Numbered from the stretch's first letter, positions 1-16,091 are shown. The stretch is 64,000 nt of DNA from Adineta vaga (GCA_021613535.1 CP075494.1:5394001-5458000), one strand, 5' to 3'. Notes: a model not told the origin generated them from the sequence alone. Numbers and translations: made by a program.

Positions 1-3000
1 AAGATCTGTAACGGCCTTTTCATCTTTAATTCCAGTAATTCGTGTTATACATTGATAGCATGTATTTTGTATATGTGTATCATCAAATAATGCTTGAACC
101 ATCATTTCGCAAAATTGAATTGTTAATTCTCCGAACACGGATAAAATAGTTAGACAAGCAGCACGTTGTGGAAAATTATGTTGTTTACTCGTATAGAACA
201 AAGAAAGCTTGATATCATCTTCACAATTCAAACTTCTAACAGCACCACAGAATGTTTCAGGCATTCGAACAGCAATTAAACTGGCAATTTTTACATATTG
301 AGGATTTCCATATGACAAATAGTATTCTACAATCCCAAATGGCATGATACGATCAGTAAAATGACGAATGGAATCATATAATTCCATCAGAAAGATGGAC
401 AGTAGAGAGGGATATTGTTCAATAAATTCAGCTACAGCAATTTCACTGTTCTCTTGTACATCATAAAGAAATATATATGCTGTCGCTTCAATTAATGCAT
501 GATAACATTGAATATGATCAGCGCCAAGTGTCTCAAATAAGAATGACGTGTCTTTTACAGCACGTCCAAAACCATTACGAGCAGCTTTAACAACATCCTG
601 TGAGGAATGCCGCAGTAAAATTGCAAATAAGTCTATATCAGCTAGATCGAATGCAATATGATTTACTGAAACACAATAAGTATAACCTGAAATGAAGGCA
701 ATTAAAACCTCATTGGAATAACTTGGAGTGTCACTACTCAGGTCATTCAATATTTCTTGCACTTTTTCGAATAGATTCTTGTAAGTTGCTCCACTGCATA
801 TATAACTGAGAGCGGTAGCTGCTGCAATTTGAATTTCCTTGTTACAACAGATTTTAAATAATTCCATTAGCGCTTCGATAGCTATTTGACGTGTCTCTTC
901 TGTATGATTTAATTCATTTGCTAAACTTACAACTATGGAGACAACGAATTCAGCATGACTTTGCACAACGACATCTGATGTTGCATCACCATCAATCTCC
1001 AAGAAAGGTATGAAATTAGACGCGATCATATCACATAAATAAATGATCAAATCACCAGATATCTTAAATAGATTAGCATATGAGAAAGCATCTGTAATCA
1101 TGTCCGATGTAAGATAAGAAGCTACGATAGGATTTATTGATGATTTCGATCTATTCAATAAATATTCTCTGTTATTTAAGATATAAATCCTATATCTCTC
1201 TAACCAAAGAAATGTCTCCAAATGCGATTGATTATCCACAGTTGTTGTTGAAAGCATTCGACCTAAAGTAAATTTCATCGATGCTGACGTCTGTTGATAA
1301 TGACCTTTTTTCTTAGCTAAAGCTATGATGATGTCTAAACCAAATTTCGAGCTCGTTCGAATATCGTTATCACTATCTGTCCTCATAAGTACTTCTGTTC
1401 GCTGACGAAAACGATCGTTTTCACAACATAATAAATCACACAAGATTGTAGCAACATCAATAGACCATAAATTAGAATTAGCGAGAAGAAGAGTAGCATG
1501 ATAAGCAAATGAAGAAAATTCATTAGAATCCTTCCATTTCAACCAAGATTCTAATAAAAGACGTGCTTTAAATTCGACGATATTCATACGATGTAGAGCT
1601 TTGTTGAGCACTGCAAGAACTTGTCCTAAAGAACTCGACTGTTGTATCGATGCAGCAAATTGAAGAAACTTTGTTAATGCTAATGCTTGTGCTTCGGTAA
1701 AAATTGAACCTTCGAAATGAAATTGATTTGTTATTAATAACTCATCAATAGGAAGCGAATGTTCATTAATTTTCAAACATTGATGTAGATCACTCGTTAG
1801 TTGTAAGAGATATACATTGGACATCAACACTGAAGAAGATAAACTTTCATCGGTAAACACGTTGAAATATTTCTGCAAAACAGTTGATTTTGTATGTATC
1901 TCAATGCTTTCATCTGTTGTATTCTGTGGAAAATACTTTGTTACGGAAGAAAAACTAGAAGACGACAATATATATGGTAATAAGGCTTCATTCACAGCTT
2001 GTCGATCTCGTTGATCGGTATCATCAAATTTAGTGTACAGATTTTGAAGACATTTGTCAATTGTTTGTTGATGTTGAAGTATTGGCAGACATCGAAGAAA
2101 TATGATTGTATGTAATAATAAAGGTAACGTAGGATAAATTTCATTCAGTTGATATTCGATTTCTTCTTGTAAAGATCTACCTGTATTAACTAATATTTTT
2201 TTGTATTTTGAATAGGAATAAAAGGCAATGACACATAATGCATCAAGACGAACAAGTCTGTTCGTAATTAACACAGCGCCTTGTACACTGTCTTCTAATA
2301 AGATTTGTCGTCTTTCTTCGTCAGTCCAACGACAGATACATGCTAAGGAAATTGACGCTGCATATAGTCTCCTACTATCTCCATCGTTAGCAGATCGAGC
2401 AGTTTGAAATCGTTGTTGTTCTTCTTTAATACAGTCGTTGATGTGTCCTCTTCGTTGTTCATCTGTGACTGCATATGTACCGAAATGGGTACTGATTCTA
2501 TCAGTATATTCACCAGTCAAAATATTTATTGATCGTTGCCTATACATATGGGGAGTACTTAAAACGTCCGGATCTTTTACCGCTTGTATCCAAAGAAGAC
2601 TATCGCCGAAATTATCCAAGTAATGTATTCGAAGCCATGGCATTAACATAATCAAACCAGTGAAAGGTAAAAGTGGTTTACATGACGGATTTGATAAATA
2701 CATCAAACATTCCGTTAATATATGGCTAAAATAGAGATGTTGTTTATCGGGTTTAATTGAATCATTAAAATTAGTCAGAATAAATTTTTGTTTCAACACT
2801 CGAAGGTAAAGATTTTGTAAATGTGGAGGAATAAAAGTTAATGTGCTCAATAGATCTTGATCATTTTGAAGAAGTAAATATTTCGGCATTGTATTTAAAG
2901 CAACTACCATCTGATATTGTGTATCATATTCATCATCATGTTCTGATACATACAACAGACTTATAAATCTATGCAGTAACGAACATGAATTTCGATCATT

Positions 3001-6000
3001 GTCAAATCGTGTATCTATTGATAATAGACCATTGAGTAATTTATCTTCTTTTCTCAGATTATTGGGTAGAGTCAGCTTTAGTCTTTGAGAAGAATTAGTT
3101 TCACCATCAAGTAAAATTGATGTAGAAGCACAACGTAAACGTGCTACATTACTTTTCATTAAGTGTAAGAAATCAAAAAACTGGACACGAGCTGAATCAC
3201 CATATTGAAATTTTTCAACTGCAATAGAAATCAAGTTTGTTGTTTCGTTTTCAATCGAACGATCATTACCATCACTTGGAACGTAAAACTGTCGTAAAAT
3301 CATTGACATGTATTTCAGACGATCGATTGTCTTTTGTAGTAAAGAGTTAGAAATTCGATCTCGATTCTCTTGTACATAATCAATATCATATACACATAGA
3401 GTAGCAATACATAGATCAATCGTTTCGTAAGATTCATCATTATTATCGATATGTGCTAAAAATGATTGAATAATTTCTAATTTGAATTTCTTTAAATTTT
3501 GATCTTGTTTCGAACGATCTTTTAGAGAGAGAAATGGTATTAGTATCGATGTTATGGTAGATGATTCTCGATGAATATGCGATGGATCGAAAATAATAGT
3601 TTGATTATCACGTTTTAAACCACCATATAAAGTAATGATTAATGGTAATAGAAATGTAGGAATTGTGTTTAATTCAATCGCTTTACTTAGAAGAAATTCC
3701 TTTAATGTGTTCGAATTGTTAGGCAATAATTGATGATTTGAAAAGGCAATTTTGATTAAAAGACGATCAATAGCAAATTCATTCGTTTTATTATCAAGTA
3801 TTGATAAAGATTGAAGTAATGAACAAATGGATTGATCTAACCATTGAATGTTTTCGAATTCATGTGGTTTTCCTTCAATAAGATGACAGAAAGTAGATAT
3901 AATTTGTATATCATGGCTACGATATTGAGATAGAAATCTATTGATCCACAATGAAACAGTTTCCTTATTAAGTCTTTTCAATGTTTTGATGATGTGATCG
4001 TGAAGAAATGAGCATACGGTAGACCATTTATGTTGATTAGAAGCAACGATGATACGATCTAAGACATCAAACATAATTTCATCAGATGGATAATTAACAA
4101 GATCATTGCTGCAAATCATCAGTATACAAAGATTCTGTGGTAATAAAGAATCAGTTTCATCTTGTTCTTTTTGTAGAAATAAAAGGCAAAGTTCATCGAA
4201 ATCGTCGCGAGACCACATTGAACTTATTTTACCCAGTGCTAGTGCAATCGGTACTCGAAAATGTGAATCATTTACATGATTACGTAATGATTGAGCAATA
4301 AGTGGAATTTCATCTTCTCGTTCGGATTGATCAGTCATAAATCGACTATGATTTGATAGTCCAGTATCGATCAATTTTTGAGAAGTAAAATACTCTTGAA
4401 TTATTTTATATCGAAAACTGTAGTATGAGTGACCTTGAGGAACCAGGATACCAATATCTTCGAGAATAATTTGTGTGAATTGGGATATTTGGCTTTGATC
4501 ATCGTGCGTTTCTTCTTGAATAAGACGAGTTCTATTCGATGAGTCTTTGATCGATTGAATACAGATTTCCGCGATTTCTTTTTCAGAAATGCAATTTAAT
4601 GTTGAATGCTCATGAATACGAAAGGCAATATTACCCAGTATTCGTATCAATTTCGGCATCGACATCAAAGATCTTTTTCTGTTCCATGAAAGCAATGTGA
4701 AATGCGCAAGTTTTTCATATAGAAGAATACGTTGAGAAGGTAATGAAGATTTCTTTTGTTGGTTAAAAGAAATGGTGCAAAGCAATGATAATAGACTACA
4801 GTTAGATGCCATATCTAGAAGATCGATATTTTCAGGTTTTTCTATTTCATTTCTCAATATTTCTCCATCTGTGTTTCCTTGATTTGTTGCAGTAAGAGCC
4901 AATGTATCGATAATATGTTGATGCATAGCAGAAAACCAATAATCAATGAAATCTTGTATCTGTTTTAGGTCCATAGGTTGAACGGTATAATGAGCAAATT
5001 GTGCAGATAGTGGTGCCGCATCATATCCAACGATGCGACTTGTTACAACCAATTGATTACCTCCTGATCGAGATGGATCGTCGAACAGACGACTCAGTTG
5101 TGGATTATCAAAGACAGAAGTATTCAAAGGTGTTTGAACATACTTATCAACAAAATTCTCAATGATACTAATGATCTTTGATCGTTGATCAGAGACTGGA
5201 ATGACATCAAGACCATCAAGTATAATCAATGCTTGACCATGTTTAACATAATCTTGCAGTACACATGAAAGATCATCCGTCGAAAGTGTTGAATCATCAA
5301 TTGGAAAACATCTCATCCATTTATGCTTTCCAATGTAATCAAAAAGAGTCAGCGAAGGTTGTTTAGTAAGAATTTCAGCGAATTCTTCAATATGTATAAG
5401 AATAGGTATACGAAGAGGACCATAGTCGGTAGAATGTTGTTCGTTGAGAAGCAGTGTTTGAGCAAGATGATTGACAAACCATCGAACAAAACTAGTCTTA
5501 CCGCTACCAGGATCGCCTTGGATAACAATCCATCGTTTTGTTCGAATGATATCTTCTGCCTTCATAGTCTTTTCTGGAGTTGCTACAGTCAGATTATTCC
5601 ATATACTGTTCATCGATTCTTCTTCCCGCTTAAATTTATTATCAAATTGTCGCAATTCATTTCTTTCCAATACTGTGTGTCCATCAGATTTGAATTGAAG
5701 AGACGCATGATTGAAAGGAAGTTTAAATGTTTGCCAATTACGTCTCAACTGAGTTTGTTGTTCAAATGTAATTTGATAGAGTAGATGAGCAACTTCGGCA
5801 AGAGTGTCATCAGTAAGACCAGTCACGGGTATGCGTTGATGCATTTCAATACATCGACGAAGATACGATTCAACGATATTAGTGTATTTTTCACGTAATT
5901 GACGAAGCTGTTCTATTGTTTGTTCTTTGGTACGTTGTTCAATGGTATCTAATTGTTGTTTTAATGTTTTGTCTAAAGAATTTTGTATTAGAGCTTGTTG

Positions 6001-6360
6001 CTCTTGATAAGCATCACTCAGTATTTGAATTTTTATCGTATAATCATTTGCATTTACAGCTTCTTGTTGAGCAAGACGCTGTTGAATTCGAATTAATAAA
6101 GATTCTAAATCTTTATAAGTCAAGCCATTTGGATGAGTTTCACTCTGATGACAACTACTAATAACTTTCTCAATGACTTTTAGTATTTCTACTATATCCT
6201 TTTGTATTGTTTCGGAATCATTTAATGTCTGTCTAAGACGATATAATCTAATTTCAAGCAGTTTCCAATACTCTTGACATATTGAAATTTCACGCATACG
6301 TCCAATAATATCATCGATTGTGGCGGTAGGCGTCGTCAATATTACTGCTTCCGGTGTCAT
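1..6360 (-). CDS. Large NACHT-domain (STAND/NLR-like) protein, at least 2120 aa, 3' end outside the window: N-terminal helical domain + NACHT + WHD + long helical (HEAT/ARM-like) region
   Basis: ATG at 6360 follows an in-frame TAA (6372-6370). Manual translation gives Walker A GDPGSGKT (5517-5494), Walker B LIILDGLDV (about 5229-5203), sensor VVTSRIVGY (about 5050-5024) and WHD YSFRYKIIQEYF (about 4422-4387). The same frame is open at bases 60-1 (CYQCITRITGIKDEKAVTDL). The track lists no minus ORF here, consistent with one ORF lacking a stop in the window. Not every codon was checked. Confidence 0.9.
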   Translation of the reverse strand, partial: MTPEAVILTTPTATIDDIIGRMREISICQEYWKLLEIRLYRLRQTLNDSETIQKDIVEILKVIEKVISSCHQSETHPNGLTYKDLESLLIRIQQRLAQQEAVNANDYTIKIQILSDAYQEQQALIQNSLDKTLKQQLDTIEQRTKEQTIEQLRQLREKYTNIVESYLRRCIEMHQRIPVTGLTDDTLAEVAHLLYQITFEQQTQLRRNWQTFKLPFNHASLQFKSDGHTVLERNELRQFDNKFKREEESMNSIWNNLTVATPEKTMKAEDIIRTKRWIVIQGDPGSGKTSFVRWFVNHLAQTLLLNEQHSTDYGPLRIPILIHIEEFAEILTKQPSLTLFDYIGKHKWMRCFPIDDSTLSTDDLSCVLQDYVKHGQALIILDGLDVIPVSDQRSKIISIIENFVDKYVQTPLNTSVFDNPQLSRLFDDPSRSGGNQLVVTSRIVGYDAAPLSAQFAHYTVQPMDLKQIQDFIDYWFSAMHQHIIDTLALTATNQGNTDGEILRNEIEKPENIDLLDMASNCSLLSLLCTISFNQQKKSSLPSQRILLYEKLAHFTLLSWNRKRSLMSMPKLIRILGNIAFRIHEHSTLNCISEKEIAEICIQSIKDSSNRTRLIQEETHDDQSQISQFTQIILEDIGILVPQGHSYYSFRYKIIQEYFTSQKLIDTGLSNHSRFMTDQSEREDEIPLIAQSLRNHVNDSHFRVPIALALGKISSMWSRDDFDELCLLFLQKEQDETDSLLPQNLCILMICSNDLVNYPSDEIMFDVLDRIIVASNQHKWSTVCSFLHDHIIKTLKRLNKETVSLWINRFLSQYRSHDIQIISTFCHLIEGKPHEFENIQWLDQSICSLLQSLSILDNKTNEFAIDRLLIKIAFSNHQLLPNNSNTLKEFLLSKAIELNTIPTFLLPLIITLYGGLKRDNQTIIFDPSHIHRESSTITSILIPFLSLKDRSKQDQNLKKFKLEIIQSFLAHIDNNDESYETIDLCIATLCVYDIDYVQENRDRISNSLLQKTIDRLKYMSMILRQFYVPSDGNDRSIENETTNLISIAVEKFQYGDSARVQFFDFLHLMKSNVARLRCASTSILLDGETNSSQRLKLTLPNNLRKEDKLLNGLLSIDTRFDNDRNSCSLLHRFISLLYVSEHDDEYDTQYQMVVALNTMPKYLLLQNDQDLLSTLTFIPPHLQNLYLRVLKQKFILTNFNDSIKPDKQHLYFSHILTECLMYLSNPSCKPLLPFTGLIMLMPWLRIHYLDNFGDSLLWIQAVKDPDVLSTPHMYRQRSINILTGEYTDRISTHFGTYAVTDEQRRGHINDCIKEEQQRFQTARSANDGDSRRLYAASISLACICRWTDEERRQILLEDSVQGAVLITNRLVRLDALCVIAFYSYSKYKKILVNTGRSLQEEIEYQLNEIYPTLPLLLHTIIFLRCLPILQHQQTIDKCLQNLYTKFDDTDQRDRQAVNEALLPYILSSSSFSSVTKYFPQNTTDESIEIHTKSTVLQKYFNVFTDESLSSSVLMSNVYLLQLTSDLHQCLKINEHSLPIDELLITNQFHFEGSIFTEAQALALTKFLQFAASIQQSSSLGQVLAVLNKALHRMNIVEFKARLLLESWLKWKDSNEFSSFAYHATLLLANSNLWSIDVATILCDLLCCENDRFRQRTEVLMRTDSDNDIRTSSKFGLDIIIALAKKKGHYQQTSASMKFTLGRMLSTTTVDNQSHLETFLWLERYRIYILNNREYLLNRSKSSINPIVASYLTSDMITDAFSYANLFKISGDLIIYLCDMIASNFIPFLEIDGDATSDVVVQSHAEFVVSIVVSLANELNHTEETRQIAIEALMELFKICCNKEIQIAAATALSYICSGATYKNLFEKVQEILNDLSSDTPSYSNEVLIAFISGYTYCVSVNHIAFDLADIDLFAILLRHSSQDVVKAARNGFGRAVKDTSFLFETLGADHIQCYHALIEATAYIFLYDVQENSEIAVAEFIEQYPSLLSIFLMELYDSIRHFTDRIMPFGIVEYYLSYGNPQYVKIASLIAVRMPETFCGAVRSLNCEDDIKLSLFYTSKQHNFPQRAACLTILSVFGELTIQFCEMMVQALFDDTHIQNTCYQCITRITGIKDEKAVTDL

Positions 6361-7272
6361 TCGATCTCGTTATAGGACGATGATTCTATCGAACGTATTA
6401 GAGTATTAAATACACATATATAACATAGAAAAAGTCAGTCTACCTTCGAATTTATGAAATAATAATCAGTATAATGTCTTCTATTCTTTGAAAACTTCAA
6501 ATAAGATCAACATATCTAAAAACAATGTATGGATACTCTCGCAAAACATCGTCAAACCCAAAAAAAAACAAAGAAACAGGAAGAAAAAGAACGTTACTTT
6601 TCTTTTTTATAAAACACGTGGCGAGTATTTTTCTACTTAAAAGAGTTCCCTCTAATATTGATGATTATGCGATAAACAACCGCTCAGTCAATACCAATAC
6701 AGTCTTTTCCCACTCTTCTATCTCAATGGATAGCTATTCGGATACATTGAGCTTAAAAATTCTATTCAAAACGTACCATAGACCGCATAATATTCTTTAA
6801 TCTTATTCTAATCATACAAAATAAATATATATGATGTCATTTATTCCAACATAGAATTTAATGACTTGTTCTCATTATTCTTAGAATTTGTGTATATACT
6901 ATACCATTTCGTTTCGTGTAGTATTTATCTTCAATTCGCAATACTTGTTTTAAATTTTGATTATTTACTTTCACCTTTTTTTTCTATGTTGGAAAAAACC
7001 TCAGTTAATTTTACTATATCGCGACAATGTGTGGTTAGATTTCATTTTTCTTTCCAATGTAACAAAAACATACGACTGTAATGTCATAAAAATAACTCAA
7101 AATACAAGTCATGCGTTTTTTCGAGTTGGAAAAAACTGAAAAATGTGTTGTTGTCTCATGAAAATCACCGACATCAAGTCTACAACATATGCTGCAATAA
7201 TAAAAAAGCTTTTTGTTTTATTAGACAACATCAGAGAAAGATAGAAAGGAAGACGATGGTATTGAATACATT

Positions 7273-10194
7273 TTATTCATCTACTTGTTCGTTTTTCATT
7301 GATTTAACTTTCGCATCAATTCGTTCATAATAATCTCTAAATATTACTAAACGAGGATGATCAACTGGTAAACTTTGACTAGCAATATCAATCGCTCGCT
7401 TTTCATGTTCTAAAGCATCTTGATAATCACCAAGACATACTAATACAGCTGCCATACTATTATAAGTTACGGCTATATCCGGATGATTCGATAGTAGACT
7501 TCGATTTTGAATAGATAATGCTTTTTTGTAGCAATCAAGTGCTGTTGTATATTCCTTCATTGATTGATGGCTAACACCCATATTATTATAAACAGCAGCT
7601 AAATCCGGATGATCAGAAGGAAGAGTTTTCTGTTGAATTTCGAGTGTTTGTTTGTAACATTCCAAAGCAAGTGAATACTTTTTTAATGCTTGATTCATTG
7701 AACCCATATTGTTATATGTAATAATTAAAGCTGGATGATTCGTTGGAAGTGATTTTTTCTTAATATCAAGTGAGATTTTACAGAACATCAATGCTTTCTT
7801 ATAATCTTCTAATTTTCTATGAATATCAGCAAGATTATTGTATGTTGCAGCTATGGATGGATGATTTGCACAAAGAGATTTCTTTTGTAATTTTAATGTT
7901 CTTTCATAATATTCAAGTGCTTTATAATATTCACCAATTAGTTGATGAAAATGACCGAGATTATTGTACGATACACCAAGTAATGGATGATTTGGTGGAA
8001 AAGATTTTTGTCGAATATAAAGTGCTTTTTCATAGTAAGAACGTGCTTCTGGATAATTTCCCATTGCTTGATATGAAATACCGATATTCGTATACGTTAC
8101 TGCAAGTTCCGGATGTTCACCGTTCAATGTTTTTTCTTGAATATCCAGAGCTATTTTATAGGATAATAACGCTTGAGAAAAATGTCCCATTTGGTGATGT
8201 ATTGTGCCGATATTATTGTAAGAAAATGCTAATGATGGATGATTAGTTGGAAAACTTTTCAATTTCACATCGAGTGATTTTTCTAAATAAGAAATTGCTT
8301 TTGGAAAATCTCCCAGTTCTTGATGAATAAGACCTATATTATTGTAAATAATCGCTAATGATGGATTTGTTGGTGAAACGTGTTTCAATCGAATTTGAAG
8401 TGCTTTTTCTAAACTTGTTAATGCAGCCGTGAAATTGCCCATAGCTCGTTGAAGTTCACCTATATTATTATAAGTTGTTGCTAATTCTTGATGATCATTT
8501 GAAAACGTTTTTCGTTTAATTTCTAATGCTTTTTGATAAAAACTAAGTGCCGTGGGAAAATCACCGAGTAATTCACTCGTCAAACCAATATTATTATAAG
8601 TCGTAGCAAAGGACAGATCATTCGGGGGAAGAGTTTTTTGTTTAATATCTAATGTTTTCTTATGTGTAGACAAAGCATTAAAATAATCACCCATCTGTCT
8701 TTGAACTTCACCCATATTATTATACGAAATACTAATTGATCGATGATTACGTGGTAAATGTTCCTGTCGAATATCAATTGCTTTTTGATAGAATAGAAGT
8801 GCCGATGTATAATCACCGATTTCATCATACAGAATACCTAATTCATTATAAATATATGCCATTTTTAATGGATCAGTATCAGCGATGGAATTCAATAGAA
8901 CATAATAGATATCTTTTGCTTTATCATAAACATGAATGAGTTTCATTAATTGTGCAAGTTTAATCCAAGATGTTGAATCTTGTGTTTCAGATTTTAATAA
9001 ATCATCAAGACTAATGATTTGTTGATCATTGACTTCGGTTAATGTTAAATCAATTTGCCAGAGATAATCTTCAATTTGTTTCATTTCATCAATACGAAAG
9101 ATACTATGCATAGAGAAGAGAATAGATTTCGATTGATTAGTTGAAAAGGAAATATTTCGAAGAAACGCATATGGGCTTGATGATTGTTTTGATTCGATTT
9201 TAATTCGAAAGATAAGATTTATTTCTGTACGTGAAGGAATTGAGTTTACTGATGTTTGATAATCAGAAGCAGCAATAATGAAATTATTAAATGAAAGAAG
9301 ATTACCTTTGATTGTTTTCATTTTTTCAAAATCTTCTTTCGAAATTTGATGATTTCGATAGACAATAATGGGAAATTGTTGTGTTTTAGCTGTATCAATT
9401 TGTATCTTATCTAATTGTTGATAAAGATCTTTAATAAAAAATCCCATTCGAATAATAATTTCAATATCTTGTGTTTGAAAAGCTTGATTAAGTAGATCGA
9501 AAAGAAATGTCTCTTTCGTATACCACCAAATCGGTGAATGATGATGATAATTTCGTTCGAATTCATCGATATGTTTCAATTGTTCTACATTACCATAATA
9601 TTGCATACGACAATATGTTGTCATATCTTTTAAAGCATTATTTTCATATTTATTTTCTAAAAGAATCTGTTTTGTTAACATCCAATAGATAAATAAATTA
9701 TTGACATCTTGTAAACCTTTTTTCGAATATGTTATGGAAGGAATTGTACTCATTAGAAGACAATCAGATTTCATAGGTTTATTTGCACGTTGAAGAAAAC
9801 GAGAGAAATATTCAATTTGAGAGAACACACCTTGAATTTTATTGAAATCTTGATAAATAATTGAATTCATTTTCATCGAAGAAGAAAGAATATAAATTGA
9901 TTGAATTTGTGACATTGATTGAATAGATGATGAAACTTTTTCGAAAAATTCAGTGGAAATAAGCATGATGATCTGATTATCTTTATATGTTGAAAGATAT
10001 TTGAGACAATCTTTAACATTAGTAAATAGATCAAGAGAAATGAATGTACATCGAAGATAAGAAAGAGAATTTTGATTGATCGGATCAGAATCTATGGCAT
10101 TTGCATCAAGCCAAACTACAGCATATTTGGTTTGAGGTTCGTTGAATTCAATTGGATGAACCTGTTGATGTTGTTTTGAACGACAAATTCCCAT
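7273..10194 (-). CDS. Receiver-like + degenerate ADP-ribosyltransferase-like + TPR repeat protein (973 aa), intronless
   Basis: Likely start is MGICRSK at 10194. It has a VVWLD...CLKYL...IQSIYI receiver-like N-terminus, an ART-like core (PIWWYTKETF, VYRNHQ, LLSFNNF, ILFSMHSIFRI) and about 12 42-aa TPRs (HPxLAxxYNNxG). Confidence 0.9.
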   Translation of the reverse strand: MGICRSKQHQQVHPIEFNEPQTKYAVVWLDANAIDSDPINQNSLSYLRCTFISLDLFTNVKDCLKYLSTYKDNQIIMLISTEFFEKVSSSIQSMSQIQSIYILSSSMKMNSIIYQDFNKIQGVFSQIEYFSRFLQRANKPMKSDCLLMSTIPSITYSKKGLQDVNNLFIYWMLTKQILLENKYENNALKDMTTYCRMQYYGNVEQLKHIDEFERNYHHHSPIWWYTKETFLFDLLNQAFQTQDIEIIIRMGFFIKDLYQQLDKIQIDTAKTQQFPIIVYRNHQISKEDFEKMKTIKGNLLSFNNFIIAASDYQTSVNSIPSRTEINLIFRIKIESKQSSSPYAFLRNISFSTNQSKSILFSMHSIFRIDEMKQIEDYLWQIDLTLTEVNDQQIISLDDLLKSETQDSTSWIKLAQLMKLIHVYDKAKDIYYVLLNSIADTDPLKMAYIYNELGILYDEIGDYTSALLFYQKAIDIRQEHLPRNHRSISISYNNMGEVQRQMGDYFNALSTHKKTLDIKQKTLPPNDLSFATTYNNIGLTSELLGDFPTALSFYQKALEIKRKTFSNDHQELATTYNNIGELQRAMGNFTAALTSLEKALQIRLKHVSPTNPSLAIIYNNIGLIHQELGDFPKAISYLEKSLDVKLKSFPTNHPSLAFSYNNIGTIHHQMGHFSQALLSYKIALDIQEKTLNGEHPELAVTYTNIGISYQAMGNYPEARSYYEKALYIRQKSFPPNHPLLGVSYNNLGHFHQLIGEYYKALEYYERTLKLQKKSLCANHPSIAATYNNLADIHRKLEDYKKALMFCKISLDIKKKSLPTNHPALIITYNNMGSMNQALKKYSLALECYKQTLEIQQKTLPSDHPDLAAVYNNMGVSHQSMKEYTTALDCYKKALSIQNRSLLSNHPDIAVTYNSMAAVLVCLGDYQDALEHEKRAIDIASQSLPVDHPRLVIFRDYYERIDAKVKSMKNEQVDE

Positions 10195-10560
10195 GGATAT
10201 TGATGATTTCGTGAATTTTGTCACAGAATTCAATGTTCGTTGTAAGTAATAATTGTACAATCGTTGCAATAATTCAAAGACAAACACATTTAAGTGATGA
10301 CAAAGAACAGACTCTTAGAAAAACATCTATCCTTTTGATAATATTACAGAACATATTGCAAGTAAAAGAAGACTATAAAAAATATATTCGTAATCACGTG
10401 ATCAAATTCAAGAACTTACTCATCAAAAATACAAACGAAGATTTCATTTTTTTGATGAAAACGTTTCTCTGGTATCTTGAAGTATGTGAAGTGATTGTGT
10501 ATGGCGTGATTTGTTATTCAAATATAAGTTAATGCATGTTTATATTCTTTGTATTTGCCT

Positions 10561-11395: not shown

Positions 11396-14300
11396 ATGAA
11401 TATTCACGACGAAATTCAACTACAAACAATTAAGAATTCACAACAAAAGCATTCTTTTTCCAATTCAACAGATTATGATGTCATCTCAATTGTTACTGAT
11501 GACAGAAAATCAATCGAAGATGATCCCATTCAACGGTAACAACAATTTATCTTTGCACTTTGCACTTTGTTTTCAGCTAAATAACGATTATTTTTCTAGG
11601 AAAAATTATGACAAAAAAATTACACCATCGATAAAAATTGCTCTTCTCTTCGCTATATTCACTTCCATAGTCATGACGATTGGTATTATAATTGTATGTG
11701 TAACACATCATGAACCAGGTAAATCATTTATTGAATTTTATTCAATCATTCAAAAATATATATATATATATGTGTGTCTGTGTGTGTGTGTGTATCTAGT
11801 TGAAATATGTGAAAGTTCTTACGAACGAACTGTACATTATTCGTTAACTTTTGATTCTCGACCACGAGCAATTGTTTTAGCAGATATTAATCAAGATGAT
11901 AAATTAGATATTATTGTTGCTAATTCTGGTACAGATAATATTGGAATATTCATCAATAATAATAACACTTTCAACGATCAAATTATTTATTCAACTGGAT
12001 TTAAATCAACTCCCTATTCCATAGTTGTCAATGATTTTAATAATGATCATATCCTTGATATTATTGTTGCTCGATTTAGTGCAAATAGTATAGGAATATT
12101 TCTTGGTAAATCAAATGGAACATTCACTGATATGATCACATTATCTACTAACAATTCTCGACCATACTACATTAATGCTGCTGATTTTAATAATGATAAG
12201 AAATTAGATCTTGTCATAGTCAACTATGGTACTAATGATGTTAGTATCTATCTCGGTCATGGTGATGGAACATTTTCAAATGAAATAAGTTATTCTATGG
12301 GATATGATTCTATTCCTTATTCGGTTGTAATCGGTGATTTTAACAATGATAAAATATTAGATTTAGCCGTTGCAAACTATGGTATTGATAATATTGCTGT
12401 TCTTTTTGGTAGTGGCAATGGTACATTTTCTCTTCCAAGATTTCATTCGACAAACTATGGCTCAAGACCAATTTCTCTTACAACATCTGATATCAATAAT
12501 GATCATGTACTTGATTTAGTTGTTGCTAATTCTGGAACACACTGTATAGGAATATTCTATGGTTTTAAAAATGGAAGTTTTGCTCCTTTACAAATATATC
12601 AACTTGATATTTCAGCTCATCTACAATTTGTTACTACTGGTGATTTGAATAACGATAATCAAACGGATATTATCATATTAGATTCAACCAATGGCCACAT
12701 CTATGTATTACCAGGTTACGGCAATGGATCATTTGCAATTTTAACAGCATATATGACTGTCAACAATGCTTTTCCATATTCAATAGCAGCGGGATATTTA
12801 AATCAAAATAATCAAACAGATCTTGTAGTTATCAATTATCAAGCTAATGAAATTCTAGTTCTAATGGATTATAGTTCGAAGTTTGAAGTAATGCAAGTAC
12901 CATATTCCGTTGGACAAAATTCTCATCCACCATTTGTTGCACTCGGTGACTTTAATTCTGATCAACGATTAGATATGGCTGTTGCAAAATTATCTACCGA
13001 TAGTATTGGTATCTTAATTGGTTATGGAAATGGTAGTTTCTATCCAGAAATCACTTATTTATTTCCAACAGGTTCTGCACCCATTTGTATATCAGTTGAT
13101 GATCTCGATAAGGATGGACGATCAGATATGGTTGTTGCCAATTATAAAGCACATAATATTGCAGTTTTATATGGATATGGCAATGGAAGTTTTACAGATA
13201 TGATTACATATCCAACAGGGGTTGAAGCTTTTCCCATAGCTGTGACTATTCCAGATTTCAACAATGACACTATTTTAGATATTGCTGCTGCTAACTTCCG
13301 TATTGATAATATTGCTATATTTCTTTGTAATAAAAATCAAACTTTCACTAGTGCAGTCACTTATTCAACAGGTGTTAGTTCAGATCCTAATGCCATTGTT
13401 ATTGCAGATTTTAATCACGATTATTTATTGGATATAGCTGTAGCAAATTCAGCAAGTGGTAATGTTGGTATTTTATTTGGAAATGGTGATGGCACTTTTA
13501 AGACAGTAATTACCTATTCAACAGGATTTCAATCACATCCAGATTCGATTATTATCGGTTTTCTCAATAAAGACTCATGGATCGATATTATTGTAGCAGA
13601 TTCAACATCTGATAATGTTGTTGTACTACTTGGATATGATAACGGAACATTTCAAATACCAGTGTCATTTACACATGAATCGTTTTCGAATCCATCGGGA
13701 CTTGCTTTAGGAGATGTAGATTTTGATAATGAACTTGATATTATTGTGACGAACTTTGGCAATGATAATGTTGGAATTCTTGGCGGTGATGGAAATGGTT
13801 CATTTGCTCTAGTTCGATCATATCAATTATTAACTGGTGCTGGTCCAAAAGGAGTGATTATTGGTGATTTCAATAATAATTCTCGATGGGATATTATTGT
13901 TGCTGAATCTGGTCTTGGTTCGATTAATTTACTTGTCAGATATGTCGGTGCTACATTTCAAACTGAATTCATATATTCAACCGGTAGTGGAACACATCCG
14001 TATGGTGTCACTGTTGCTGATTTAGATAACGACGATCGATTGGATGTTATTGCTGCCAATTCAGCAAGTAATAATGTGGGTGTTTTTCTTGGTGATGGTA
14101 ATGGAAAGTTTTCACCACAGAAAACGTTTGATGTTGGTCAATCCACTCATCCACAATATGTTGTTACTGGTGATTTTAATGAAGATAATCAAACGGATGT
14201 TGCTACTGCCAATTCCAATGGTGATAGTATCAGTGTATTGTTTGGATATGGAAATGGTAGTTTCACTGATAAAACAATATATCGATTAAGACCTGGTGGT

Positions 14301-16091
14301 CAACCGTATGCTCTTGCTGTTGCTGATTTTAACGAAGATAATGTATGGGATATTGTGACAGTCAATAGAGGAACAGAAAATATTGCCATCTTTTTTGGTT
14401 ATAATTATATGTCATTTGTAGATCAACAAACATATTCAAATCCATATTCTCTACGACCTTCGTCGATGACTATTCATCATTTGAATGATGATACATATTT
14501 AGATATTGCCACGACCTTTGCAGCAAATGCTAGTGTGGGAATATTATTTGGTGATGGAAAGGGACGTTTTGATGAATTAGTTATGTATTCAGTTGGAATT
14601 AACTCGTATCCATATGAATGTATTGCGACAGATGTTAATAATGATAATAGAACAGATCTCGTTGTAGCTAATGCTGGTTCAAATACAATAGGTGTTCTCG
14701 TAAGCATTGGAAATGGATCTTTTGCTCCGGTATTATTATTTTCTACAGGTAATAATTCACAACCATATGGTGCTGCTGCTGGCGACTTTAACAATGATAA
14801 CAACATTGATATTGTTGTTGCAAACTATCGTGGTAATAGTATTGGTGTATTGTTCGGATATGGTAATGGATCATTTAATTCTGTAATAGCATACTCAGTT
14901 ATTGATGGATCTCGTCCACAATCTGTGACTATTGGTCATTTTGATAGTGATCATTTTCTTGACATTGTCGTAGCTAATTATCGTCGGGATAATATCGCAA
15001 TATTTCTAGGAAACAATGATGGTACTTTTCAACCTGCTGTTTACTATTCTACTGGATATCTTTCGATGCCAACGTTTATCAATGCAAATGATTATAATAA
15101 CGATAGTAAATTAGATGTTGCTGTCACTAATAAAAATAATAATAATATTGGTATTTTGTATGGAAATGGAAATGGTACATTCGCATCTGTCGTGTTCTAT
15201 TCGACAGGCGATGGAACAAGTCCTCACAGTATTCGTTCAGGAGATTTCGATAATGACAAACGAATCGATATTGCAGTTGCTTGTCCTGGAACAAATGATG
15301 TTGTCATATTATATGGAATAGGTAATGGTAAATTTCTATTAGGACCATCATTCTCGACCGGTTCCAAATCAGGATCCGTATCATTAGCAATAGGTGATCT
15401 TGATAATAATGGTCGATTAGATATTAGTACGGCAAATTACTTAAGTAATAATGTTGGTGTACATCTAAGTTATGGTATACAATATTTTGGAGGTATATCA
15501 CGATATTCTCTTAGTTTAGGTTCACTTCCATGTTCACTTGCTACAAGTGATTTTAATAATGATAATCATACTGATATCGTTGTTACTAATTATGGTACGA
15601 GTGACATTAGTATTATGATGGGTTATGGTGATGGATCATTTGGTTCATTAATCAAACATTCATTTCCCAATGGTTCGCGTCCACAAGCAGTTGCAGTTGG
15701 TGACTTAAATTTAGATAATAATACCGATATCGTTGTTATTGATTCTGCATTTAATAATATCTATTTTCTTCTTGGAGTTGGTAATGGTACATTCACTTTG
15801 ATATCGATCTACTCAACTGGCTTAGATTCTCAACTTCATGACGTCAAAATTGCTGACATCAATAATGATGATCTTTTAGATGTTGTTGCTGTTGCTTCTG
15901 GAACGAGTAAAGTTATAATATTACAAGGTTATGGAAATGGAACATTTGGAAATGAAACTTCGTATCCTATGGGTTATAGTTTCGATCCATATGCAGTTGC
16001 TATAGGAGATTTCAATCGTGACGATTGGTTAGACATGGCTGTGGCGAATTATGGTGGTGATTATATCGAAATTCTATTACGTTCTTGCTAA
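11396..16091 (+). CDS. Type II membrane protein with 28 FG-GAP/VCBS repeats (four 7-bladed beta-propellers)
   Basis: ATG 11396 starts MNIHDEIQ...PIQR. Intron about 11536-11599, then a TM exon (IALLFAIFTSIVMTIGIIIVCV), an intron about 11719-11798 containing (TA)n(TG)n, and a long exon with 28 DxNxD...D(I/L)(V/A)VAN motifs. Confidence 0.88.

Follow-up and report, generated by a model that had tools for sequence, protein, structure and literature searches.

The window analysed here is a 64,000-nt stretch of the genome of the bdelloid rotifer Adineta vaga (GCA_021613535.1, CP075494.1:5394001-5458000, here G000:C5:5394001-5458000), in an assembly of 100.8 Mb in six contigs with a GC content of about 30%. 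Across its first edge runs, on the minus strand, a giant gene for a protein with a short helical N-terminal head, a NACHT NTPase and a probable C-terminal alpha-solenoid. We found that an ATG at window position 6360 opens a frame that is stop-free down to window base 1 (2,120 codons, aa 1-2120), and that the adjoining genomic DNA, contiguous with the window and read without joining any exons, carries the same frame on for 474 nt or 158 codons (L002:9527-10000) up to a stop codon at L002 9524-9526, outside the window. The complete open reading frame (ORF) comprises 2,278 codons (6,834 nt, 2,278 aa) with zero internal stops; the gene is intronless and no intron is needed to read it. Such an open frame is not due to chance, because of its length of 2,278 codons at about 30% GC. 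An earlier note on this DNA, made from the sequence alone, had described an intronless ORF of at least 6.3 kb, which is borne out and whose C-terminus has now been reached in the adjoining DNA. The same note called the gene hidden. It is indeed unlisted in the ORF track, but only because it runs off the window end, and it is publicly annotated (P0001).

In the public annotation the gene model P0001 is 2,367 aa long, and the orthologs go by the name 'NACHT domain-containing protein'. The first 94 residues of P0001 repeat a part of the upstream TPR gene (residues 393-483; ORF 7273-10287) and are then joined to residue 7 of the protein described here; the borrowed stretch of the TPR gene lies at window 8833-9111. 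TPR-gene contigs from four sequencing runs, probably of RNA, cross the supposed donor site near 8833, and none of them joins 6340. The RNA nature of these runs is a guess, which fits the fact that contigs end at the 3' end of the TPR gene in all four. Since the contigs lack the junction and the orthologs begin at the local methionine, the ATG at 6360 was taken as the start. The annotated upstream exon, copied from inside the TPR gene and given no support by the contigs, was rejected as probably chimeric, and this extra 5' exon is probably a gene-prediction artefact.

Both orthologs in Adineta ricciae are single ORFs of 2,259 codons each. The order TPR / NACHT / cytochrome b561 is common to the window genome and A. 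ricciae, where the TPR neighbour is 78% identical to the window TPR gene. These observations bear on the possibility that a giant intronless gene with a bacterial-type NACHT module stems from bacterial contamination or from misassembly. The gene sits in a 16.9-Mb contig, 5.4 Mb from its start, flanked by a TPR_12 and a cytochrome b561 gene in the order conserved in A. ricciae, its GC content of about 30% is that of its surroundings, and the named proteins that carry its head all belong to bdelloids, so that contamination or misassembly appears extremely improbable.

The Pfam NACHT model (PF05729) matches aa 277-478 and, at 31.6 bits, exceeds its cut-off of 26.7; the motifs are in place, with Walker A GDPGSGKT at aa 282, Walker B LIILDGLD at 378 and TSR at 440. 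With a NACHT domain above the curated cut-off and both Walker motifs, the protein is a NACHT-type STAND NTPase. The earlier note had named a NACHT here and found the wording of its motifs bacterial, an affinity that the searches below support. The C-terminal 1,500 residues or so probably form a HEAT/ARM-like alpha-solenoid, the presumed sensor. In the tail of the window protein the Pfam repeat matches are weak (Arm E 0.034, HEAT E 0.084), and HEAT_2, HEAT and Arm appear in the precomputed annotations of orthologs and bacterial relatives. No CARD, PYD, BIR or DEATH head and no leucine-rich repeat (LRR) tail matched in Pfam, with the whole protein at E<=0.1 or with its parts at E<=10. Between head and NACHT, aa ~150-215 are all that the N-terminal part has in common with paralogs bearing other N-terminal domains.

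A search with aa 265-780 returned bdelloid proteins first and then giant prokaryotic proteins of Chloroflexota, Cyanobacteria and Acidobacteriota, with 25-30% identity spanning about 98% of the 516-aa query. No non-rotifer animal protein was among the named matches of this search, in which most rows are nameless. The best prokaryotic relative, P0068, is encoded on a 720-kb bacterial contig and is collinear with aa 264-1032 (E 2e-72). In these relatives the N-terminus bears a Peptidase_C14 (caspase), Trypsin_2, CHAT, TIR or Metallophos domain, and the C-terminus has HEAT repeats. Within the rotifer genome, SIR2_2 occupies the N-terminus of three paralogs (E 1e-15 to 1e-17), of which L015 and L016 are almost identical and lie in opposite orientation some 70 kb from each other, while four others (L006, L007, L009 and L013) have a different helical head in common, for which no homology to the window head was found. 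At least 20 more NACHT matches of the same kind occur in the genome, many of them in open frames of 2,000-2,200 codons, and dozens of intact relatives are found in Rotaria.

A quick maximum-likelihood tree of 128 NACHT modules was built with a midpoint root and held no canonical animal or fungal NOD-like receptor (NLR). One clade of 69 rows (SH-aLRT 100) takes in every named bdelloid row (35) and nine of the 12 A. vaga rows, with no named prokaryote. A 17-row set with named prokaryotes adjoins it in an unresolved fork, more named prokaryotes lie further out, and the three SIR2-type paralogs stand apart from the clade of 69 on a long branch. By module homology and tree, that is on sequence grounds, the protein belongs with the bacterial giant NACHT-HEAT proteins, and acquisition of its NACHT chassis from bacteria is the best reading of these data, not a proof. 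Curated anti-phage models added little to this picture, as PADLOC gave only a 17-bit P-loop match and NCBIfam nothing of note.

The four N-terminal helices proposed in the earlier note coincide with helices predicted by AlphaFold2 (AF2) at aa 11-22, 29-48, 54-72 and 82-102. A first model of aa 1-270 built from 4 sequences reached a pLDDT of 57.8 and was replaced by a model on 17 sequences (pLDDT 84, pTM 0.75), in which four packed helices are followed by a fifth at 107-139. A four-helix bundle plus a brace is, at the level of a predicted model, well supported for the head, and the plain coiled coil that the earlier note had set against its own proposal is not what the model gives. The predicted layout, with an up-down four-helix bundle at the extreme N-terminus and then a linker or brace helix, is that of executioner bundles. 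Cys70 is invariant in the 17-sequence alignment and aligned to a conserved Cys of helix 3 of MLKL_N.

Residues 1-140 are 45-60% identical among orthologs. An exhaustive HMMER pass over 1.84 billion representatives returned 19 proteins, all with the same domain, and among the proteins fetched about 50 carry the head, almost all of them at the extreme N-terminus (first ~six residues) of a NACHT giant. It was not found in bacterial relatives, and the N-termini of bacterial and sister-clade relatives gave no match when compared with the window head or with MLKL_N. Only one second genomic copy exists, on a broken contig-4 NACHT paralog (L017, G000:C4:15156500-15166400, frame 3), which was translated with X at stops. 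Its head scores 47.5 bits to the family profile, its Walker A has become GNPGSEKT, and it is a pseudogene, with its NACHT region interrupted by three in-frame stops. Two stand-alone copies came into question as adaptor partners and were discarded, P0005 because a contig end truncates it and P0017 because it is a PDZ gene model with a fragment fused to it.

What this head is related to was addressed with family models of the MLKL / HeLo / SesA / CC-RPW8 group, taken as PF22215, PF14479, PF17111, PF17107 and PF05659 (CC, coiled coil). When 49 family members were searched singly against Pfam, DUF7032 matched 26 of them (best E 5.7e-7; highest score seen 26.7 bits, under the cut-off of 27), SesA matched 18 (best E 1.6e-4; 17-20 bits in the members listed against a cut-off of 26.3) and MLKL_N matched two, below threshold, while every noise family matched seven members at most. 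In the ten members with listed matches, the DUF7032, SesA and MLKL_N alignments begin no later than position ten in protein and profile alike. The SesA profile has been called 'related', its alignment falling on the region that Helo_like_N and the MLKL domain also cover (PMC9815663), and SesA is among the heads fused to fungal 'all-in-one' NLRs (PMC12881547). A whole-genome search with SesA and DUF7032 found nothing above cut-off, and no RPW8 or Rx_N sequence similarity was detectable in the window protein with Pfam.

Genuine MLKL_N domains (34-62 bits) are encoded at no fewer than 11 loci of the rotifer genome, some with ORFs of 511-527 codons that join MLKL_N to a protein kinase and others with short ORFs for the bundle alone, so that MLKL-like proteins, as judged by these profile matches, exist in the rotifer. 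An hhalign comparison of the 49-sequence profile with six rotifer MLKL_N sequences gave a collinear alignment of columns 16-108 with 24-120 (score 26.5, P 0.0013), against 19.2 for the reversed profile, at most 17.9 for 60 column shuffles and at most 19.6 for 60 block shuffles. With ten MLKL_N templates the score was 22.5, and P ranged over 0.0013-0.0057. A rotifer MLKL_N hidden Markov model scored family members at a median of 3.3 bits versus -1.0 for 83 decoy N-termini, and the best family member at 12.6-13.7 bits versus 8.3-9.0 for the best decoy, the members not being mutually independent. In a profile search of PDB sequences, mouse MLKL ranked fourth of 177,635 (E 0.054), in register. The 49-sequence profile found no match at E<=10 in a set of 5.8 billion proteins, probably on account of the length window. 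No single one of these lines (Pfam, hhalign, PDB profile) reaches conventional significance alone; they agree with one another, and together they suggest, weakly, a kinship with MLKL_N.

Structure searches point in a similar direction. Foldseek against PDB returned nothing below E 0.15 for either model; with the 17-sequence model the best E was 0.35 and MLKL ranked second (TM 0.36). An exhaustive structural scan took in 48,161 PDB chains. A second structural comparison gave 11.1 for Cbl-c, 10.5 twice for NRG1.1 and 8.6-9.5 for five MLKL entries; the MLKL entries had the highest identities of the structural list (13-15%), in alignments that cover the whole model. Structure matches in the ESM Atlas fell in plant CC-NLR and Rx_N clusters (TM 0.53-0.56).

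We regard as firm that an animal genome encodes here an effector slot and a NACHT on a bacterial-type chassis, with a probable solenoid behind them, which upholds the effector-NACHT-solenoid layout that the earlier note had inferred for an invertebrate. We think it rather probable that the head belongs, as a distant relative, to the MLKL / HeLo / SesA / CC-RPW8 group. The corresponding claim of the earlier note stands in so far as several weak lines concur, and falls short in that none is conventionally significant and the window sequence has no Pfam match. For the reading as a whole, in which an all-in-one STAND/NLR receptor combines a bacterial-derived NACHT-solenoid body with a head of the MLKL group in one bdelloid subclade, the chances appear to be evenly balanced.

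Several observations count against that reading. The window head (aa 1-130 and 1-270) gave only noise in Pfam, the hhalign probability is only 6-19%, and the structural scores are within the range of generic helical bundles, with Cbl-N and designed bundles interleaved. ESM Atlas feature searches with the window domain and with P0012:1-143 returned no usable match. DUF7032 is a family with a putative link to MLKL-type bundles, and a literature search on it found no paper. NRG1 and MLKL have a basic lipid-binding face; the rotifer head is mildly acidic, with an isoelectric point (pI) of 4.9 in the window copy and a family median of 5.65. Rotifer MLKL_N domains span a similar pI range, and net charge is uninformative as a discriminator.

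Together with the lack of any Foldseek match below E 0.35, several of these points favour the main alternative. In it the protein is a functional NACHT-solenoid receptor, but the head is some generic helical domain, such as a lid for autoinhibition, a docking site or a module serving for oligomerisation or as an adaptor, with at most an analogy to MLKL-type executioners and no membrane action. We consider this alternative a substantial possibility, though not a probable one. It has against it that three seemingly related families (DUF7032, SesA and MLKL_N) recur far above the noise families, that the profile score exceeds the reversed control and all 120 shuffles, and that it is the MLKL entries whose structural alignments span the model with the highest identities. 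Nor did the genome yield a second protein with this head as a candidate homotypic partner, the sole other copy sitting on the broken NACHT pseudogene; the short stand-alone matches that were checked are the contig-end fragment and the fused gene model mentioned above.

Two further points count against the main reading. The residue after Walker B (DGLD-V, aa 386, window ~5203-5205) is V, where A. ricciae and the bacterial relative have E and Rotaria has Q, and this change may affect ATP hydrolysis. Transcript cover of the ORF is limited to two contigs, one of 178 nt at 5093-5270 and one of 175 nt whose end falls on 3300-3342, whereas in the same four runs the neighbouring TPR gene is fully covered at a depth of 8-16, by contigs continuous from about 7113-7157 to beyond 9200. 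Along with the pseudogene on contig 4, these points would suit a gene that was acquired horizontally from bacteria, is now silent or in decay and has no present function. We think this very unlikely, since the frame has stayed open over 6.8 kb of AT-rich DNA, the syntenic A. ricciae orthologs and dozens of Rotaria relatives are intact, and low basal expression is usual for NLR genes. The ratio of nonsynonymous to synonymous substitution (dN/dS), calculated by Nei-Gojobori, is 0.30 overall and 0.19 in the N-terminal domain for the two A. ricciae copies (range over the parts 0.19-0.32), and 0.20 overall for the window gene versus A. ricciae (range 0.19-0.28; dS ~1.2). Because dN/dS is about 0.2-0.3 in both comparisons, every part of the gene is under purifying selection, the N-terminal domain included. 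Of the two failings that the earlier note had foreseen for its gene, interruption of the frame is absent, and in the matter of transcription the evidence is faint.

If the head does belong to the MLKL group, a mechanism for an all-in-one receptor can be proposed. The NACHT and the solenoid of about 1,500 residues would have descended from giant bacterial NACHT-HEAT conflict proteins, and this body has expanded in bdelloids; in one subclade the effector slot holds the 140-residue domain of bundle and brace-like helix. A ligand would bind the solenoid and release the NACHT, which would oligomerise on nucleotide binding; the N-terminal bundles, now clustered, might form a channel or insert in a membrane, with ion flux or cell death as the outcome. 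That the head permeabilises membranes upon NACHT-driven clustering is proposed by analogy and tentatively, at slightly less than an even chance.

A review describes four-helix-bundle executioners fused to NLRs in plants and fungi, and for animals only the kinase-activated MLKL (PMC12881547). Our literature search found no paper on NACHT or NOD-like receptor genes of bdelloids or rotifers, nor on an animal NLR with such a head. Bdelloids may have grafted an MLKL-family bundle, also kept in the rotifer MLKL_N-kinase genes, onto a bacterial NACHT-solenoid chassis, the fusion then expanding to the dozens of copies in Rotaria. Within the reach of our searches, it would constitute the first metazoan all-in-one four-helix-bundle NLR and the third independent convergence of this kind, with plant CC-NLRs and fungal HeLo-NLRs, a scenario that we hold as possible and a little less likely than its opposite.

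Comparison with known systems helps to place the protein. Plant CC-RPW8 helper NLRs (NRG1/ADR1) and CC-NLRs (ZAR1, Rx, MLA) have an NB-ARC where the rotifer protein has a NACHT, and an LRR sensor instead of a HEAT/ARM-like one; the rotifer head is acidic rather than basic and lacks detectable sequence similarity to RPW8 or Rx_N. The fungal HeLo, HeLo-like and SesA NLRs (PMC12881547; PMC9815663) resemble it in bearing an MLKL-related helical head on a NACHT, and the SesA matches in 18 of the 49 rotifer members are in register from the N-terminus where listed. Those matches are, however, below cut-off, the fungal sensors are WD40, ANK or TPR repeats and not a HEAT/ARM-like solenoid of ~1,500 aa, and the rotifer NACHT groups with the bacterial giants in a tree that had no fungal rows. 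Unlike MLKL, with its bundle, brace and pseudokinase, the rotifer NACHT protein has no kinase or pseudokinase; its activation would occur by NACHT oligomerisation and not by phosphorylation, and its head similarity is far weaker than that of the genuine MLKL_N domains of the same genome (34-62 bits). With the bacterial giant NACHT-HEAT proteins (caspase, TIR, trypsin, CHAT or SIR2 heads) it shares the homologous NACHT and post-NACHT module, a similar total length and probably the solenoid tail, but its head is absent from the bacterial relatives examined and it belongs to an animal. The layout of an N-terminal signalling domain, a NACHT NTPase and a C-terminal repeat sensor, the last of these only presumed in the rotifer protein, is also that of canonical animal NLRs (NLRP, NLRC, NAIP), whereas neither a death-fold domain nor an LRR was detected in the rotifer protein.

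If the proposed reading is right, the design of an executioner bundle on an NLR arose again in Metazoa, and horizontal gene transfer would be tied to the growth of an animal immune repertoire. Residues 1-140 would offer a compact system in which to ask whether induced proximity alone activates an MLKL-type bundle, and the paralogs with SIR2 or the other helical head on the same chassis provide a natural comparison set. Should the bundle prove to be a plain adaptor, the family would still represent an undescribed bdelloid expansion of giant bacterial-type NACHT genes. The coordinates of the features discussed are collected in Table 1.

Table 1. Positions of the NACHT gene, its parts and related loci in the A. 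vaga genome (window coordinates unless a locus is named).
Feature	Residues	Position	Strand	Basis or remark
Window part of the 2,278-codon ORF		1..6360	-	No stop; A. ricciae orthologs likewise single ORFs
Last 158 codons and stop		L002:9524-10000 = G000:C5:5393524-5394000	-	Just outside the window
Start codon		6358..6360	-	In-frame stop three codons upstream; ortholog N-termini align here
N-terminal domain, predicted four-helix bundle and start of long fifth helix	1-140	5941..6360	-	AF2 model, family searches
Helix 1	11-22	6295..6330	-	AF2
Helix 2	29-48	6217..6276	-	AF2; aligns with conserved N..QC..L..RI helix of rotifer MLKL_N
Helix 3	54-72	6145..6201	-	AF2; Cys70 at end
Helix 4	82-102	6055..6117	-	AF2; conserved NG.TY.DLES.L motif precedes
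Long helix 5, brace-like	107 to about 176	5833..6042	-	AF2; MLKL structural alignments run through first part
Pre-NACHT region	about 150-264	5569..5913	-	aa ~150-215 common to paralogs
NACHT NTPase domain	277-478	4927..5532	-	Pfam and motifs; Walker A 5494-5517, Walker B 5206-5229
NACHT and post-NACHT module	264-1032	3265..5571	-	Collinear with 2,080-aa Ardenticatenaceae (Chloroflexota) protein, 28% identity, E 2e-72
C-terminal region, probable HEAT/ARM-type alpha-solenoid, presumed sensor	781-2120 in window, continuing to 2278	1..4020	-	
SIR2_2-headed giant paralogs, ~2,190-2,200 aa		L014:500-7066; L015:2875-9471; L016:496-7092	+; -; +	Pfam
MLKL_N loci L027-L036 of G000		e.g. L034:926-2458; L036:895-2475; L033:936-1391	+; +; +	

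The neighbourhood of the gene gave some further observations. The upstream neighbour (window 7273-10287, minus strand) encodes 1,004 aa rich in TPR_12 and TPR_10 repeats, and its contigs end at ~7113-7157. At window 8604-8770, inside these TPR repeats, the contigs of all four runs swap 165 bases for 39 other letters, a replacement that probably comes from paralogous TPR genes rather than from splicing. A cytochrome b561 gene (L002:8613-9362, plus strand) immediately follows the NACHT stop but is read from the other strand, an arrangement also present in A. ricciae, and a second copy is found at L002:1047-1775. Farther into the window, at 11475-16091 on the plus strand, an intronless ORF of 1,538 aa with 23 FG-GAP_3 repeats (E 6e-154) looks bacterial and is a further candidate for a foreign gene.

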